A stretch of 63,011 nucleotides of DNA, filler included, from Reticulomyxa filosa (taxonomy: Eukaryota > Protista > Foraminifera), in assembly GCA_000512085.1 (NCBI GenBank). It is 23 parts of 23 records of this genome, joined end to end, with 100 filler letters (N's around TTAATTAATTAA, not from the genome) between each part and the next. Parts side by side here need not be neighbours in the genome. Positions count along the whole stretch, not along the records: positions 44,942 to 52,713 come from ASPP01021208.1; 22 more parts are not named here. One strand, written 5' to 3'. Below the pieces are notes generated by a model. It saw only the letters and a list, made by a program, of their open reading frames with translations. It did no database searches and had not been told where the DNA came from. This document shows, one piece after another, positions 44,942 to 52,713 of the stretch; the first letter of the stretch is position 1; the number at the start of each line of letters is the position of its first letter. A program made the position numbers and the translations under genes.

Positions 44942-45607
44942 CAAATTTCCAAGGCCATTAGGCAATCGCTCTATGCGCATCGACTCTCCTACCATTCGCG
45001 ACATTCGACTGAAAGAAGAAGAATTGGCTCCAAATGGCCATGACGAAGACGAAGACGAAGAAGATGCCAAAGAAAACATGGATGGTCATCACAAACAAAG
45101 ATCTTCCATTATAAACGCTTCCCAAAATAGCAAACTTTTGTTCCAACCACAACTAACCACCCAAGATTTTGAAACCATATTGTATGTTCAACATCTTTAT
45201 CCATACTTATTTTTTTTAATTTTATCATTTTCTTGTTTTTCAAAAAAAATAGGAGCAAATATGTGAAAGATGGAGCAGAATTAGGTTCCTCTGACGTGGA
45301 AAAAGTATTTCCTGATTGCTTGAATGTATTGTATGAGAATGTTAAGAAGGCGTGGGAGAAAGATCATAGCAATCTTCCGATTAAATCGTTGGAAAATTTT
45401 TACTCGAAATATTCCGGAGACAACCTGAAACCACAATGCCAAAAATTCCTCACCGAATTAACCGAGAAAACTCAAAAAAATACCTTTGATCCTGATGTTG
45501 TTTTATCTACATTTAATTCCAGTGTTGTCAACAACTTTGCAGAAAACTTGAGTGTTTTGGTTAAGTCCCAGACTCATAGGCAGTCAGTAATTGGCATGAG
45601 CCAATAG
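44942..45607 (+). CDS. Hypothetical protein, 3' part
   Basis: Two coding-like ORFs joined by an intron at 45182-45252. Confidence 0.6.
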
Positions 45608-46153
45608 ATTCCCAAAATAGAAGATTCCTAAAGAGAAAAAAAATGAAAAGTTTGAAATGTGTAATGGGTTGTCTTTTTCTGTTGTGGGTTTTTGTTGTTG
45701 TCTGGGTGAAAATTATGGCAATCACTTGTTCGAAAATACAACCAAGACAAAAATTAATTGAGAAGATTGTCCTTTTGTATATTTATGCAAGGTGTTTTTA
45801 TTGAGTTGTGAGTTAGAAGAGGTAAAAGTGGGCAATAAACTTTTTCAAATCTGTTTGTTGCTTACTGTTCAGGCGATAAAATTGTTCATTTTTTTAAGCG
45901 CTAAATCTTTTCGCTTTGTTTTGACCAAGTAGTCTGGTTTTTGAAAAGTTGAACTGTTGGAATTTACAAGAAAAAAAGCAAAAAACATGCCAGCAAAAAC
46001 AGCCAAAAAAACACAAACAAATGAAATTGATACAATCAAAAGAAGAAATAAGTAGTTTTGTGAAACAAGAAGCAAATAAATACAGCAACAAGAAATTTAG
46101 CTCTTTTATTTGGTATTATTTTTGATAAATTGAAAAAACTTACTTTTTCACTT

Positions 46154-49120
46154 TCACATGAGATTGCAACCACAACCAATAGAATTGGAAGCAACAGTTG
46201 AAGCTTTCTCACTAAATTTGGTCTGTGGAGAGGGATCAGCGATTCTACCAACAAACCACACTAAGTCATTTTGCGTTGTCAACAAATACAAATCAAATGG
46301 ATAATTGAAAGACTCTTTGACGACACCATTTTTAATAATTTCAACAGGTGTTTCTGGCAATTTTGTTTCTTCGTTAATGTGTTTTGTATAAGCGGGTGTG
46401 AATCCAGTCTCATCCACACATAAGTGAATCTGTTGAATCAACTGTGACATATGCAATCCTCTCTCCTTGGCATTATTACACATTTTGCTAAAATCGGCTT
46501 CAGTTGAATCAAAAGCCACATTTAAGTGTTGTGACTCTTCCAAAAACTGAGCAACGTCCATGTGGGTTACAATGTCCATTTTTGGGATTCGTAAATCAAC
46601 ACATACTTCTTTGCAATTATTAATTAAATCATACACTTCGCCCAACCTAATGAACAAGTATCAAAAACCAATTGTGATAAAGCAAGACAAGACCCAAAAT
46701 AAAATGAAATGAAACTAACGTCAAAGGTGCTTGGCTAAAATCGCAAGAGGTATATTTGATCAAGACCAAAGACAAACTTTGCAACAAGTCGTCATGCAGC
46801 AAATGATAGTTTAAAACAACGCAGCACTTTCCAACACGATTAGCTTCTTCAGCGGTGGCAATGTCATTATAATACAAAACATTGCGCACATCATGCATAA
46901 ACGGAATTTGTTTCAGTTCGCAATCGCAGTGTTCACTTGTAAAGAATGGCAGTTGGAAGGTATCGTCTACATCGAATTCATATTCAAACACACCTTTAAA
47001 ATACAACGTCGACACGCCAATTGATGCCGCGTCATAGTTGATCTCTTCCATCACATGTTCGATCTTGCTATTAGTCTGTCGACCCGCCCATTCATTGATT
47101 TTACGTTGAATTCTCTTATGTTTCGACTCATCCGATAGTGCTGCATGTCGAAGATATCTCTTATTGCATTCCAAGCATCAAACATTAATACGTACACATA
47201 TACATATAAATATGATAATATTTGTAATATAACAAAACTTTAAATGTCTTTGAAAAGCTGGGAGAAATGCTGAAACAACTATCGACCCAAACACATGTGC
47301 CAACATAAAGTTGAGTCATGACCGGTGCATTACTTGCTTTGCGTGATCTTTTGGAAGAGCTAATATCCGAGATTTCAAAGTCGTCAGGAGACTGTTCCGG
47401 CTCTTGGCTCTGCTCTTGACTTTGTTCCTGCTCCTGCTCCTGCTCTTGTACATCATCCGCGATGGGTGATGGGATGACCAAAGAGTGACCCGAGACATGG
47501 CCAAAGGAATCGGCAGTATCGATGGTCAAAGCCGGGGCGTCGATTAAAAATTTTTTGACAGGTTCTTTGTCATTAGTTGCCAAAGGTGTGACTTTATCAA
47601 TCACCGTCGGCAATTGAGATGTGTTTACATTTGGCGTCGGGTCGGATAGTTGTATTTGCAGTGTCTTTATTGCGTTGCCATTTTTTGGCTCTTCCTCCTC
47701 ATCCTCTTGGATGGCCGCAAACACACCGCTGTCGTTGGTTTGAAGATGAGAAGGAGGAGGAATGACCAGATCTTCGGAAGAAGGGACTCGCTCTCTGGGC
47801 TCATGTATCTCCGCTGCTCGTCCAGCCGGTCCATTTCTTTGTTATACTTTTCTTTAAACTGCCGGTTTATGCCTTGTTGCCATAAAAACAGTTGTTTCAC
47901 TTTTTCACGAGATTCCGTTTCCCAATGTCCCATGTCTGTTCTTTTTTTTATTTTTATTTTTTGGTTTATTTCTTTGTTCCCCGCTTTTCTTACGTATACA
48001 AATTTTTTTAATATAATAAAAAAAAAAAAATGTTCCTATGTTACCACCAATAAAAAAAAAAATTATACGTGCGCAAAAAAAAAAAATTTTTTAGGAAGTT
48101 TAAAAAAAAAACACACATACATACATACATACATACAAATGAACGAACAAAAACAAACCCAGATGATGAAATTTGGGCAGTTTGGTAATTAGGGAATCCA
48201 AAGAAGCTTTGGTCCGACCGTTGGCCCCTAACCAGAACAAGCCCAGCATTTGCCACAAGCCAATGGGACAGATGGCGACGTTGGAGAATTTGTATTTGAG
48301 TTTTCGATTGTATTTCTCACTTATCGTGCCTCGCTCGTAATGCATATAATACAGTGCTTTGCGATACATCTCATTGCAAAAGCGATGCAACACCACCGCC
48401 GCAATTGGAAATGGAATCTGCTGTGTCACTCGCGGACTCGTGCGATATTTCAATGCATTGTTATTGTTATTATTATTATTATTATCTTCCATTAATGACA
48501 GACTCTCTTTTGTTTTGTACTCATTGTTCCCTTTTTTTATTGACTTCAATCTGAACTCAAACTTTGCCAAGGCTTTTTGCGCTTCATGGCTTCTGTTTTG
48601 TTTTTTTTGTTTGTTTATTTGTTTTATTATTCGTTTATTGAATTGAATTTATCTTTTTTTTTTTGTTGTTTGATTGATTGTCTTTTTTTTTAGCTTAACA
48701 TTTACTCAACTGGATTGCTCGTCGCAAAGCGGGAACCCATTGCTGAGATGCATTTGGATCTGAGCATAGTAGATAATTTATTGTTCGATTTTTACGCCAA
48801 ATACATATGCTTTGGTGTATTTTTTTTTTTAGTGATTTTGTGTTCTTATTACAGTTTGGACAGTTTCAAAGGAAAAAATGCAATGGAAAAACATATTGCG
48901 TGTACACGGGCTTTGATTCAAATTTGCTGCTTTTCAAGTCGCTTCGGATTGCTTCCAAAATGTCTGTTACTTCTATTCTCGCTAGTATTTTTTCACGTTT
49001 CGTTGGACTCTCGTAAAAACACAACTCGTCATTTGTTAAAATTCCATATGATTTCACAAAGTCACCATCTTTTGGATGATCCAACCAATCTTCATGCAAT
49101 ATTCGAGGTGACGATGGCAT
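46154..49120 (-). CDS. PH domain-serpin fusion with C-terminal CaaX box (about 780-790 aa, 6 or 7 exons)
   Basis: Exons 49120-48906, 48809-48711, 48592-48159, 47935-47239, 47159-46720 and 46646-46154, all GT-AG. PH: ILHEDWL..YGILTNDELCFYE...QQWVPALRRAI. Serpin: NVAICPIGLWQMLGLFWLGANGRT, INEWAGRQTNSKI, LYFKGVF, LRIPKM, ADFSKM, VDETG, FNYPF..LVWFVGRIADP. Ends GCGCNLM*. One frame discontinuity near 47730-47830. Confidence 0.85.
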
Positions 49121-49958
49121 CCCTGACTCGCTATGCTTATAATCTTTTTTCTTTCAGTCTGCTCCCTTTGCACGGGGGGTTTTGACGATTATTTACATTT
49201 AACACAAATTAGCGTGTATCGCAAAGTTAAACATGAATATCAAAGGAAAGTTATTTTGAGTAATTGTAATTAACTTTGACCAAAATTTCCAGCAATTTCG
49301 TCATCCGTGATTGGTTTCCAAAGTCGGGGATAAACAACTTTTATTCGTTACGGACGAAAATACATTAGTCAATAAAAATGACAACGTTTTTTCTTTGTCA
49401 TTTTCATTAGTGTCACACGTTGAAAAGGCGGCATAAAAAACCTCACATAACACAAATTGAAAACCAAGCAAACCAAGGTAAATACATACAGTCTAAAGGG
49501 CTTTTCATGTGAACAACGCTTTTGACGCAAAGGTTTTAAAAATTTTAACGCACGTTGAATGCAATCAAATGTTTTCAGTTGAATTATAATTTGTGCTAAT
49601 TGCAATGTTTATTGATGTTTGGTTGCGTAGTGGATAAAAAAACAACAACGAGGAAAGATATGATTGAAGAGAAGTTGTCGCTTGTTTTTCTGCTCCAATG
49701 TATTTAAAAAACCTTTAGGGAAAGTAAAGGTTACATAAAAAAAACTGACGCATATAACCCAAATATAAGAAAAAACGTCTGAAAATTGCATCCAAATCAC
49801 TTGCCAGCACTATTCAACGACAATTCGAGAAATGGAGAAAGAGAATCCAATAGCCGGCGGACAACCATTGCAAGGAGAAAAAGGGAGAATAAAGTGTGAA
49901 AAAAAAAAAAAAAAGGAAAAAAGTACATATACATATATATATATATATGTATATATAT

Positions 49959-51447
49959 TCATATAAACACATTTAACTTGTCTTTGGAGGCGACTTGGGA
50001 ATGACTCGAGCGCAATTCTTCCGCACTGGCACTTGAACTTCGTTGTCGTTCTTGTTTGTCTCTGCCTTTTTCTCTTTCTCTATCTCTGTCTCTATCTCTG
50101 TTTCTATCTTTATCTTTGTCTTTGTCTTTGTCTTTGTGCGTGTCAGTGTCATTTTGAGGAGACAAAGAAGACCTCGGAGGAGCAGCATTGGAGCCGACAA
50201 GAGCGGCAGGGGTTTGTCTTTCGGAATAGTGTGGATGTTCATCATTGGAGGATTTAAAGTCCTGTGGCTTTTTTTCATTATTGTCAAAGTCATTCATTAA
50301 TTCATGCTTCGGACTTTTGTGGTTGTCATTTTCGCTACCATTTTTGGTATTGCCTTCATTTTTGTCTCCTTTTTCTTTTTCTTTTTCTTTTTCGTTTGAA
50401 CGAGACGAGTGTTCCCCTCCTCCTCCTCCTCCTCCTCTTTTTCCGTGATGGTGTCGTGAATCCGACTTTTTCTTTTGACTACGCGATCTGCTTTTACTAT
50501 TGCTTTTGCTTTTACTTTTGCTTCGACTCTTGCTTTTGCTTTTACTTTTGCTTTTGCTCTTGCTCTTGCTTTTGCTCTTACTTTTGCGCTCTTGCTCTTG
50601 CTCGGGCTTCGACTGTTGCTATAACCACGACTGCGACTGCCCACTTGCTTGTTGCTGCTGTCCTTGTTGTGCGAACTGCTGTTTTTATGAGATCGATGCT
50701 CTGCGTGTCTTCGCTTGCGGCTGTTGCTGTTGCTACGGCTTCGGCTTCGGCTATCGCTACGACTGCGAGGAGCGCGACTGCGACTTCGCTCACGAGATAC
50801 GCTACTCTCACTGTCATAACGTCTCCTTCCTCGAGGGTTCTTTTTTTTTTTTTTTTTTGTTTTTTTGATTGGGTGAGTCAGCAAAAAAAAAAAAAAAAAG
50901 GGGTTAGAAAAACAAGGAAGAGAAAGAGGACCAAAAAAAAAAAAAAAAAGTTTGAAACTTTCTTCCAGCAGAATCATAACGTCCAGATCTTTTGTCATTG
51001 CGATTACGGGCGGGCTCGACAATCAATGGCACTCCCAATAAACGCCGGCCAGATAAATGTTCTACTGCCGATTCTGCGTCGCTTGATCGTCGGTATTCCA
51101 CAAAACAAAAGTTCACTTTCTGTTTCACAAACACAATCATCCATTTCATTATCTTTGCAGGCCTTTTTTTCTCTCTCTTCTTCCCTTTTCCTCATCTTTT
51201 GACATAAGGTTAACTTGTCCTCTATCTTTAAAGTCAAAATCTACTAATTGTCCTGTTTGTTATTATTTTGTTTGCTTGTTTGTTTGGGTTGGGCTTGTTT
51301 GTTGCTTCCCTCTTCTCTTTTTTTTTTGTGTATAATGGAGATCTTTTCGTCCTTACCATATTCAGAAAACAACTTTTCAACCTCTCTTGGTGGGACTTTG
51401 TACTTAATGTTTCCGACATATAAACGGGTACTCCTTGAACTTGGCAT
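49959..51447 (-). CDS. SR-family splicing factor (RRM + RS domain)
   Basis: RLYVGNI (RNP2)..LFSEYG|QLVDFDFKDRGQ|KVNFCFVEYRRSSDAESAV (RNP1), then an RS/KS/RD-rich tail; a 1-base frameshift at 50582-50585. Confidence 0.9.
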
Positions 51448-52273
51448 GTTTGGATGGAGGGTGATTCACCAAAAAAAAAAAATGTTAACAGGCGAGCAAA
51501 GCTCAGCGCTTAACAAACATGGCAGCTATTGTTGATGAGAAATCATGCTTCGTTTACTTCCTGCAATGAGCATACACTATCTGCAATATTTTGAATAGCA
51601 TTTTGAACAGTACTACATCTGCTCTTTTTCTTTGCTCTTCGAAAAATTTTTAACTGAATGGCTGTGCTCACTTTGTTTAGTATTGTCATATTGTCATAAA
51701 TAAGGAATCAGCACTTTTTGTTTTTAAACTAGTTGCTTGGTGCTAAGTGTCAATCCATTGACTGATCTGACGTTTTCCCGTTCGTTGCGATGATATGTGT
51801 TTGCGAATTTGTCGTTTTTCAGACATAAACTGTTTTAGTTGTCTTCAAAGGGCTTATTTTGGCTTGTTATATTTGCAAAAAAAGGCGTTGCTGTTCTTCC
51901 TCTTGACTGTGGCTGTACAACACCACCTATGCCAAAATACAAAAACAAAAAATGGAACTAAGCTCGTCCCTGGACACCCCTTCTCAAGGTTCAAATTAGG
52001 TAATATTGGACCAAGCATTTGCCTTTACAAAAATGATAAACAAATTTGGTTTTGATTTAAGGTCACATATTCAACGAACATGACCTAGACAAGTGGGTAT
52101 TATTAAAAAACATATTGTTTGTAAGGAAATACACTTTACTCAAAGCGTCTAATTAACAAAAAGAGAAAACGCACTTGTTGCAGCAAGGCCAGTGCAAAAG
52201 AAAAAAGGTGCAGGAAAGAAGTGAATGAATATTGTTCTAACATCGCACCCTTTATCCATTGAAGATTATAAAA

Positions 52274-52713
52274 TATGAGCGAACTGAACGAGCAATTATT
52301 ATCTGGCAATGGTGGAGCCAGACCTCCACCTCCAGCCCCAGATGGAGAAAATAGATCAAAACACCGGTCTATAGCAGCACCCTCTGGCCATAAACGTGCG
52401 TGTCGCAAAGGAGACAAACTTTTTTTTTTTTAATATAAAAAAGATAAGACAAACAAATTCAAAATGAACCATCTTTGAAACAGAACCACTATCCGACCCT
52501 CGACTACTATTGGAGATGCGTCGCAAGTTTAAGCCATCAGGCGTGCGTCCTCCACCTCCGCCAAAGACAGTGGCCTTTCAGCAAAATCGAGTGAAGCGTC
52601 AAGGATCAGTGCATCAACAAGCACACGTCGTAGCACCCCCATTGGAACTGACAATAGGCTCCAATGGTAGACACCTTTTCACAGCAATCTTAAAAAAAAA
52701 AAAAAAAAAAAAA
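52274..52713 (+). CDS. Hypothetical proline-rich protein, 5' part
   Basis: MSELNEQLLSGNGGARPPPPAPDG..|EPLSDPRLLLEMRRKFKPSGVRPPPPPK; intron at about 52396-52483. Confidence 0.5.

Follow-up and report, generated by a model that had tools for sequence, protein, structure and literature searches.

The window analysed here, 63,011 nucleotides of DNA from the foraminifer Reticulomyxa filosa (assembly GCA_000512085.1), joins 23 parts of 23 records end to end. The part at positions 44942-52713, from record ASPP01021208.1, is AT-rich eukaryotic DNA (37% GC), and carries on its minus strand, from 49120 to 46154, a PH-serpin-CaaX gene that we call the window gene. We consider it quite probable that this is one real gene for a protein of ~790 residues, combining a PH domain, a serpin and a CaaX box, and that the product is a membrane-anchored, non-inhibitory serpin, its lipidation, location, activity and PH ligand being predicted from sequence features. 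The encoded parts stand in the order N-terminal PH domain, Lys/Asn-rich linker, serpin with a long acidic insert, and short tail with the CaaX box. The gene structure, the two folds, the fusion and the terminal Cys that are conserved among relatives, and a non-canonical hinge in the serpin were all observed in the present analysis.

Together with a few relatives, the window gene forms a small family of foraminifer type. Exon 7, run as the query of an exhaustive HMMER search against 1.84 billion representatives, returned four close relatives only, the 35 other matches below E 1e-3 being mostly ordinary serpins, and a profile search added two further relatives. The family comprises, besides the window gene, RFI_24076 (P0001, locus L002) and RFI_03706 (P0002, locus L003) of R. 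filosa, P0003 (locus L001) and P0040 from JGI samples, P0004 from an ENA metagenome and P0036 from GCA_024449935.1. Exon 7 is 83-85% identical to P0001 and 40-45% to P0002, depending on the method; exon 6 shows 40% identity to residues 1-129 of P0003, on which exons 6 and 7 map in order. Word-indexed protein searches with the exon-6 open reading frame (ORF) and with the ORF across the PH-serpin junction of the ENA contig L004 gave no match, the product of the window gene being absent from these databases, and a metagenome scan with the family alignment gave generic serpins only (24-28% identity) and no added locus with a complete N-terminus.

The main argument for a single gene comes from L004, a contig that holds the C-terminal half of a PH domain, the linker and serpin helices A-C in one ORF (3-719), uninterrupted over 238 codons. 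All 32 residues of exon 2 align to residues 20-51 of this ORF (E 2e-5), and exon 3 aligns to residues 119-202 (E 8e-13). The comparison supports a single PH-serpin-CaaX gene as the probable arrangement, as opposed to a splicing mirage.

The sequence-only reading of this DNA had joined six fragments into one gene through phase-compatible GT-AG introns. We find the same six coding blocks, numbered exons 1, 2, 3, 4/5, 6 and 7 and separated by five introns, at the same coordinates (see table), with the support of L004. The coding span runs from the ATG at 49120-49118 to the TGA at 46156-46154. All five introns are of the GT...AG type, with lengths of 73-223 nt and 19-29% GC, as against 36-48% GC in the exons, and their sizes agree with the published intron statistics for R. 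filosa (PMC13746701). Phases are compatible at each of the five junctions. The coding sum, 2375 nt plus the stop, amounts to 2378, or 3n+2, the same count, one base short, as was given before; the missing base is not at any junction, and we could place the defect inside exon 4/5. All profile, search and fold tests on the window gene described below were run exon by exon, the scripts having translated the exons separately.

PH domain, serpin body and C-terminal tail

The PH domain is the weakest of the claims made for this gene, but four lines of evidence agree on it. The PF00169 profile matches exon 1 over profile positions 3-58, half a domain (E 0.16, 13 bits), and the stretch of L004 homologous to exon 2 over positions 72-104 (E 0.052, 14.5 bits), and the two half-domain matches are colinear and complementary. 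Per-model p-values, obtained by dividing the Pfam E-values by 24,736 models, are ~6e-6 for exon 1 and ~2e-6 for the L004 stretch, and can be used in this case because the PH domain had been named beforehand. In the ESM Atlas, PH clusters come on top for exon 1 (0.91-0.93), and the ten best named matches all belong to the PH family or clan. The AlphaFold (AF2) model of exon 1 alone shows four strands, with a mean pLDDT (predicted local distance difference test) of 79.8. When this model was compared with the PDB by Foldseek, nearly all of the top 50 matches were PH domains (PLEKHA7, evectin-2, Akt1, BTK, dynamin), with probability ~1.0 and a root-mean-square deviation of 1.6-3 Å over ~50 residues; the E-values are merely 0.05-0.3, since the query is half a domain. 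The Trp of the PH C-terminal helix is found as QQW in exon 2 and as HDW in L004. The β-sandwich and the Trp-bearing C-terminal helix of a PH domain would thus both be accounted for, the former in part by the four-strand model of exon 1 and the latter by exon 2. As a PDB sequence search with exon 1 gave no PH match, the assignment relies on the profile, language-model and fold evidence, which together uphold the N-terminal PH domain of the sequence-only reading.

In the AlphaFold model of exon 1 alone, a helix (TDILEAIRSDLKSS, residues 51-64, at 48929-48970) occupies the place of β5 in a canonical PH domain. The helix might come from modelling half a domain only, in which case it is an artefact, or it might be a true insertion between β4 and β5.

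The ligand of the PH domain is a separate matter. High-affinity phosphoinositide-binding PH domains carry a basic K-Xn-[KR]-X-R signature in β1-β2, and specific phosphoinositide binding is limited to a minority of PH domains. In exon 1, the β1-β2 stretch (residues 7-30) has 2 K/R versus 5 D/E, and the signature, looked for in this stretch, is absent, with no [KR]-X-R at the start of β2. Because β1-β2 is net acidic and lacks the basic signature, we do not retain the label of phosphoinositide-binding that the domain had been given. A protein pinned to the membrane at both ends, with the PH domain as a specific phosphoinositide binder, would agree with the presence of the fold and with the many structural matches that bind phosphoinositides (Akt1, BTK, PLEKHA7), but the charge of β1-β2, the missing signature and the small share of PH domains with such specificity make it unlikely.

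The serpin assignment is firmer. PF00079 (cut-off 27) matches exon 6 with E 2.2e-13 (50.6 bits, profile 120-204) and exon 7 with E 6.8e-12 (45.7 bits, profile 258-370), and exon 3 with E 0.024 (profile 20-52). The segments 20-52, 120-204 and 258-370 stand in gene order, in line with the ordered set of serpin motifs reported before. The closest PDB sequence to exon 7 is MENT (E 4e-4). The fold was tested on the relative P0003 (38-40% identity to exons 6 and 7 of the window gene), which is continuous from helix F to the C-terminus and matches PF00079 with E 1e-25 (91 bits). Its AF2 model (pLDDT 76, predicted template modelling score 0.75) matches PAI-1, conserpin and Hsp47 in Foldseek with E 2e-14, among 389 matches at E ≤ 1e-3. 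By both profile and fold, the window gene is a member of the serpin superfamily. Its serpin body departs from the usual plan in two regions. An acidic, low-complexity insert of ~170-200 residues lies between helix D and s2A (32 D/E vs 14 K/R in 170 residues); it is ~3x longer than in L003 or L004 and is probably disordered. The helix G/H region is shortened.

The reactive-centre loop bears on whether this serpin inhibits proteases. The inhibitory hinge consensus has Glu at P17, Gly at P15, Thr or Ser at P14 and small residues (Ala, Gly, Ser) at P12-P9, and both hinge composition and loop length are constrained in inhibitory serpins. The hinge of the window gene, ETGFTPAYTK, against EKGTEAAAAT in MENT, retains P17 Glu and P15 Gly, and has Phe at P14, Pro at P12 and Tyr at P10. 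In its relatives P14 is Glu or Gln and a Pro lies within P12-P10, with charged, Gln or Pro residues across P14-P10. Counted from the hinge Glu (P17) up to PF in s1C, the loop has 39 residues in the window gene and 23-27 in the relatives, the count in alpha-1-antitrypsin being ~29. Across the family the loop sequence is unconserved, and the flanking strands are strongly conserved. The window gene thus falls outside the inhibitory consensus at its hinge, and conservation of loop length is lost as well. Given the non-permissive hinge and the variable loop length, the family is, on balance, likely non-inhibitory.

A membrane-bound inhibitor acting on a cytosolic serine or cysteine protease (of the subtilisin, calpain or metacaspase type) would account for the retention of P17 Glu, P15 Gly and the serpin core motifs, and for MENT, a clade-B-like intracellular inhibitor, being the top sequence match. 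We regard it as improbable in view of P14 Phe, P12 Pro and P10 Tyr, of the charged or Pro residues at P14-P10 of the relatives, and of a loop of 23-39 residues, where inhibitors have a tightly fixed length.

At the other end of the protein, the tail GCGCNLM-stop of the sequence-only reading was read again at 46177-46154. Its last four residues, C-N-L-M, have Cys at position -4, Leu at a2 and Met at X. The N-terminus, MPSSPRILHEDW..., is devoid of a hydrophobic signal-peptide stretch, and the earlier statement that no signal peptide is evident therefore stands. At the level of sequence, the tail of the window gene has what defines a CaaX box: the Cys at -4, an aliphatic a2, an X that selects the enzyme, and a protein that is predicted to be cytosolic. 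Met, Gln or Ser at X leads to farnesylation and Leu to geranylgeranylation, and a Cys near the CaaX box is the usual second, palmitoyl, signal. Farnesylation and palmitoylation of the window-gene tail are predicted by its sequence.

A Cys is present in the final four residues of all seven family C-termini (7/7), and the CaaX Cys is invariant in the family alignment (C160); the tails are otherwise unlike in length and sequence, and that of P0003 is predicted to be disordered in its AF2 model. Canonical CaaX boxes are found in 4/7, namely CNLM in the window gene and P0001, CVVL in P0036 and CLIQ in P0004. P0036 ends in C-S-C-V-V-L, with the Cys spacing of the window gene (C-x-C-a-a-X).

Coding frame and splice junctions

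In exon 4/5, frame A stops at 47669-47667 and frame B opens at 47841. L003 and L004 align with the start of the exon in frame A and with its end in frame B, and the zone where the frame changes falls within the low-complexity acidic insert. We considered a mini-intron that would mend the defect: 53 GT..AG excisions of length 3k+2 would leave the frame open, and those sparing the conserved helix-D residues have 47-57% GC, as against 19-29% in the five supported introns. With no AT-rich GT..AG candidate, a mini-intron is disfavoured. Downstream of the frame change, 510 codons are open in AT-rich DNA, and all conserved family motifs and the CaaX box are retained. The genome of R. filosa was assembled to draft level, and its scaffold N50 is 3.6 kb (PMC13746701). 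The frame defect is most probably an assembly indel, and an atypical intron appears quite unlikely.

The defect could also be a real and recent frameshift, in which case the window gene would be a recent pseudogene whose translation would end at 47667, once the PH domain and helices A-D of the serpin have been made. The frame defect is indeed present in the assembly and finds no convincing rescue by a mini-intron, and the genome contains one or more truncated 3'-end copies of the gene (L002). However, the 510 open codons, with every conserved motif and the CaaX box kept, speak against loss of function, and a single-base error is plausible in a low-complexity insert of a draft assembly (PMC13746701), so that we give the pseudogene a small chance.

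The relatives bear on the splice junctions in different ways. At junction 1 the spacing agrees with L004 (FEGK-xx-LAIW vs FESK-xx-ICIW), but the match of the exon-1 tail to residues 1-19 of L004 lacks significance, as 790 out of 2000 shuffles scored no lower; this junction is more weakly supported, and the argument for it is the continuity of the PH domain. At the position of intron 2, L004 is open straight through as a single ORF. ORF1 of L004 ends at the exon 3 boundary, and the position and phase of intron 3 are conserved, with D-M-G-x-W in both sequences. ORF2 of L004 covers window exons 4-6, the end of exon 5 falling at its residue 108 and residue 2 of exon 6 at 110. An intron is present at the position of intron 4 in L003, and none in L017 or L004. 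Intron 5 is conserved in position and phase in L004 and has a counterpart at the equal position in L003, and P0003 and L017 read through the same position.

Two separate genes, a stand-alone PH protein (exons 1-2, ending ...AIQLSKC-stop) and a serpin-CaaX protein starting from the Met of exon 3 (MEDNNNN...), are very unlikely given the L004 ORF and the junction support from relatives: the unspliced PH frame does stop five codons past the donor, and exon 3 offers an in-frame ATG ahead of helix A, but L004 holds the PH C-terminal half, linker and serpin N-terminus in one 238-codon ORF, intron 2 is phase-compatible, GT-AG and 19% GC, and 34 more codons are open upstream of the exon 3 Met.

Three of the related loci are themselves incomplete or altered. 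L003 (ASPP01003416.1, 1-1384), the paralogue RFI_03706, is incomplete because its contig starts within the gene, and is annotated publicly as two models, of 253 and 164 residues, divided at the counterpart of window intron 5. L002 (ASPP01020687.1, 8011-9222) is a truncated copy, 1.2 kb long, that covers no more than the 3' end of the window gene and ~600 bp of downstream flank. Its nucleotide identity to the window gene is 79-92%, with 79% in the non-coding flank; it has a 91-nt gap over intron 5 and the beginning of exon 7, and the protein is without three residues (YLL) of s5B. It is annotated as RFI_24076, a hypothetical protein of 119 residues, and is probably a pseudogene fragment. We did not keep L002 as an informative paralogue, a truncated 3' copy being silent on the N-terminus. 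L017 (JGI 3300030741 contig, 300-430) has a frame shift in serpin s2B/s3B, where ...RYYDGKK and DYHLKNTDLLDRLSLVLVKR are read in different frames. The lack of introns where the window gene has introns 4 and 5 suggests that the contig may stem from mRNA or from a relative with few introns.

Locus map and neighbouring features

Features of the window gene, with positions counted along the whole window
Feature	Position	Strand	Description
Exon 1	48906..49120	-	N-terminal half of PH domain (β1-β4); ATG; phase-2 donor GTACAC
Intron 1	48810..48905	-	96 nt, GT..AG, 29% GC
Exon 2	48711..48809	-	C-terminal part of PH domain: β6-β7 and C-terminal helix with signature Trp (...QQWVPALRRAI)
Intron 2	48593..48710	-	118 nt, GTTGAG..AG, 19% GC; between PH domain and linker plus serpin
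Exon 3	48159..48592	-	Lys/Asn-rich linker (including an N9 run), serpin helix A, s6B, helices B and C
Intron 3	47936..48158	-	223 nt, phase 1
Exon 4/5	47239..47935	-	697 nt; helix D (frame A), acidic insert, s2A and helix E (frame B)
Frame-change zone, A to B	47670..47841	-	Needs +1 nt or loss of 3k+2 nt
Intron 4	47160..47238	-	79 nt, phase 0, GTTTTG..AATAAG
Exon 6	46720..47159	-	Serpin helix F, s3A, s4C, s3C, s1B-s3B
Intron 5	46647..46719	-	73 nt, phase 2, GTTAGT..TTAG
Exon 7	46154..46646	-	s6A, helix I, s5A, reactive-centre loop, s1C, s4B, s5B (FNYPFD...GRIADP), 25-residue tail, TGA
Reactive-centre loop	46310..46411	-	Hinge ETGFTPAYTK (P17-P8); aligned to MENT
CaaX tail G-C-G-C-N-L-M	46157..46177	-	C-N-L-M with a second Cys two residues upstream

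Upstream of the window gene lies a neighbour on the minus strand (50300-51447) with the look of an SR-type splicing factor. Its RRM extends over two exons, at 51447-51247 (PF00076 E 1.4e-5, profile 1-34) and 51149-50907 (E 4.4e-5, profile 37-66), and is accompanied by an Arg/Ser- and Lys-rich low-complexity region (51022-50300) and an ORF of RD/RE/KD repeats (50297-49959). Hexamer-based tandem repeats, (TGCTTT)n and (TGTCTC)n, at 50489-50603 and 50057-50137, lie inside the low-complexity coding region of this neighbour. On the downstream side, convergent ORFs of 97 and 124 residues on the plus strand (44973-45607) gave no Pfam match, and may be exons of an uncharacterised gene.

Proposed role and comparison with known systems

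In the mechanism that we propose, the protein would stay in the cytosol, as it has no signal peptide. The Cys of CNLM would be farnesylated, and the end trimmed and methylated, and the Cys two residues upstream would be palmitoylated, in a Ras-like manner, so that the lipid anchor would hold the serpin on the cytosolic side of a membrane. The PH domain would contact a protein partner or bind lipids weakly, rather than act in specific phosphoinositide sensing, and might serve as a second membrane tether. The serpin body would be a membrane-bound binding or scaffold module instead of a suicide protease trap, in the manner of the non-inhibitory serpins Hsp47, MENT and maspin in other compartments. 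The design recurs in uncultured relatives, which makes it probable that the window gene encodes a non-inhibitory serpin tethered to a membrane in the cytosol. A broader proposal, which we put forward tentatively and with rather less than even confidence, is that Foraminifera have a family of lipid-anchored cytosolic PH-serpins. In this proposal the metastable serpin body, bound to the membrane, would be a scaffold or a conformational switch instead of a protease trap, serving for instance the very fast transport of membranes and organelles in reticulopodia.

A number of observations weigh against this picture. The endings of three of the seven family members are non-canonical (CWSF in P0003, CCNY in P0040 and CCF in P0002). 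The two PH half-domain pieces, with 13 and 14.5 bits, each score below the Pfam gathering score of 25.1, and the N-terminal half of the PH domain is known from the window gene alone, L004 ending at the contig edge. The coding sequence as assembled carries a one-base frame defect in exon 4/5, and the splice pattern is a prediction from homology. Finally, an unusual hinge is still compatible with inhibition in some serpins.

To our knowledge, serpins are regarded as soluble, single-domain proteins of body fluids, the secretory pathway, the cytosol and the nucleus. In literature searches for serpins with PH, CaaX, prenylation or Reticulomyxa, we found no PH-serpin and no naturally prenylated serpin, in agreement with the sequence-only reading, to which no described PH-serpin-CaaX architecture was known. 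The conserved combination of PH domain, serpin and Ras-like anchor would place a serpin on the cytosolic membrane face, for which the literature searched holds no example. If true, this would be the first case of multidomain serpins in eukaryotes that carry a lipid anchor by nature, and the uses of the serpin fold would extend further beyond protease inhibition. Serpin biochemists would gain a natural test case for whether the metastable fold can work while tethered to a membrane, and a lineage-specific invention would be added to the poorly known cell biology of Foraminifera.

The nearest known sequences are RFI_03706 (P0002) and RFI_24076 (P0001), of the same family, with the same or a related Cys tail and, in L003, introns at the same positions. 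The R. filosa annotation splits or truncates the genes of this family, so that both proteins are annotated as fragments, of 164 and 119 residues respectively, and the N-terminus is seen in neither. Multidomain bacterial serpins, ~30-40% identical over the C-terminal half, are likewise fused to targeting modules, and the prokaryote-like P0010, P0023 and P0028 have N-terminal extensions of 200-350 residues. In contrast to the window gene, the bacterial proteins have signal peptides, extracellular anchoring modules and Ala-rich inhibitory hinges, and neither a PH domain nor a CaaX box.

The tail resembles those of H-Ras and N-Ras in being flexible and in having a CaaX box with Met at X (the farnesyltransferase class), and the C-x-C-a-a-X arrangement is that of H-Ras. 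The cargo, however, is a serpin and not a GTPase, lipidation is in our case a prediction, and relatives ending in CWSF, CCNY and CCF depart from the canonical box.

Among serpins, the window gene is comparable to MENT, maspin, ovalbumin and Hsp47, which share the serpin fold and the lack of a signal peptide, and its hinge is off the inhibitory consensus as in ovalbumin, maspin and Hsp47. In MENT, the closest PDB sequence, a functional insertion is likewise located near helix D, and the P0003 family model is matched in structure by Hsp47, PEDF and further serpins. Whereas these four serpins are single-domain and soluble (in the nucleus, cytosol or lumen of the endoplasmic reticulum), without a PH domain or a prenylation signal, the window gene joins a serpin to a PH domain and a predicted lipid anchor, and differs from them also by the acidic helix D-s2A insert of ~170-200 residues and the shortened helix G/H region.

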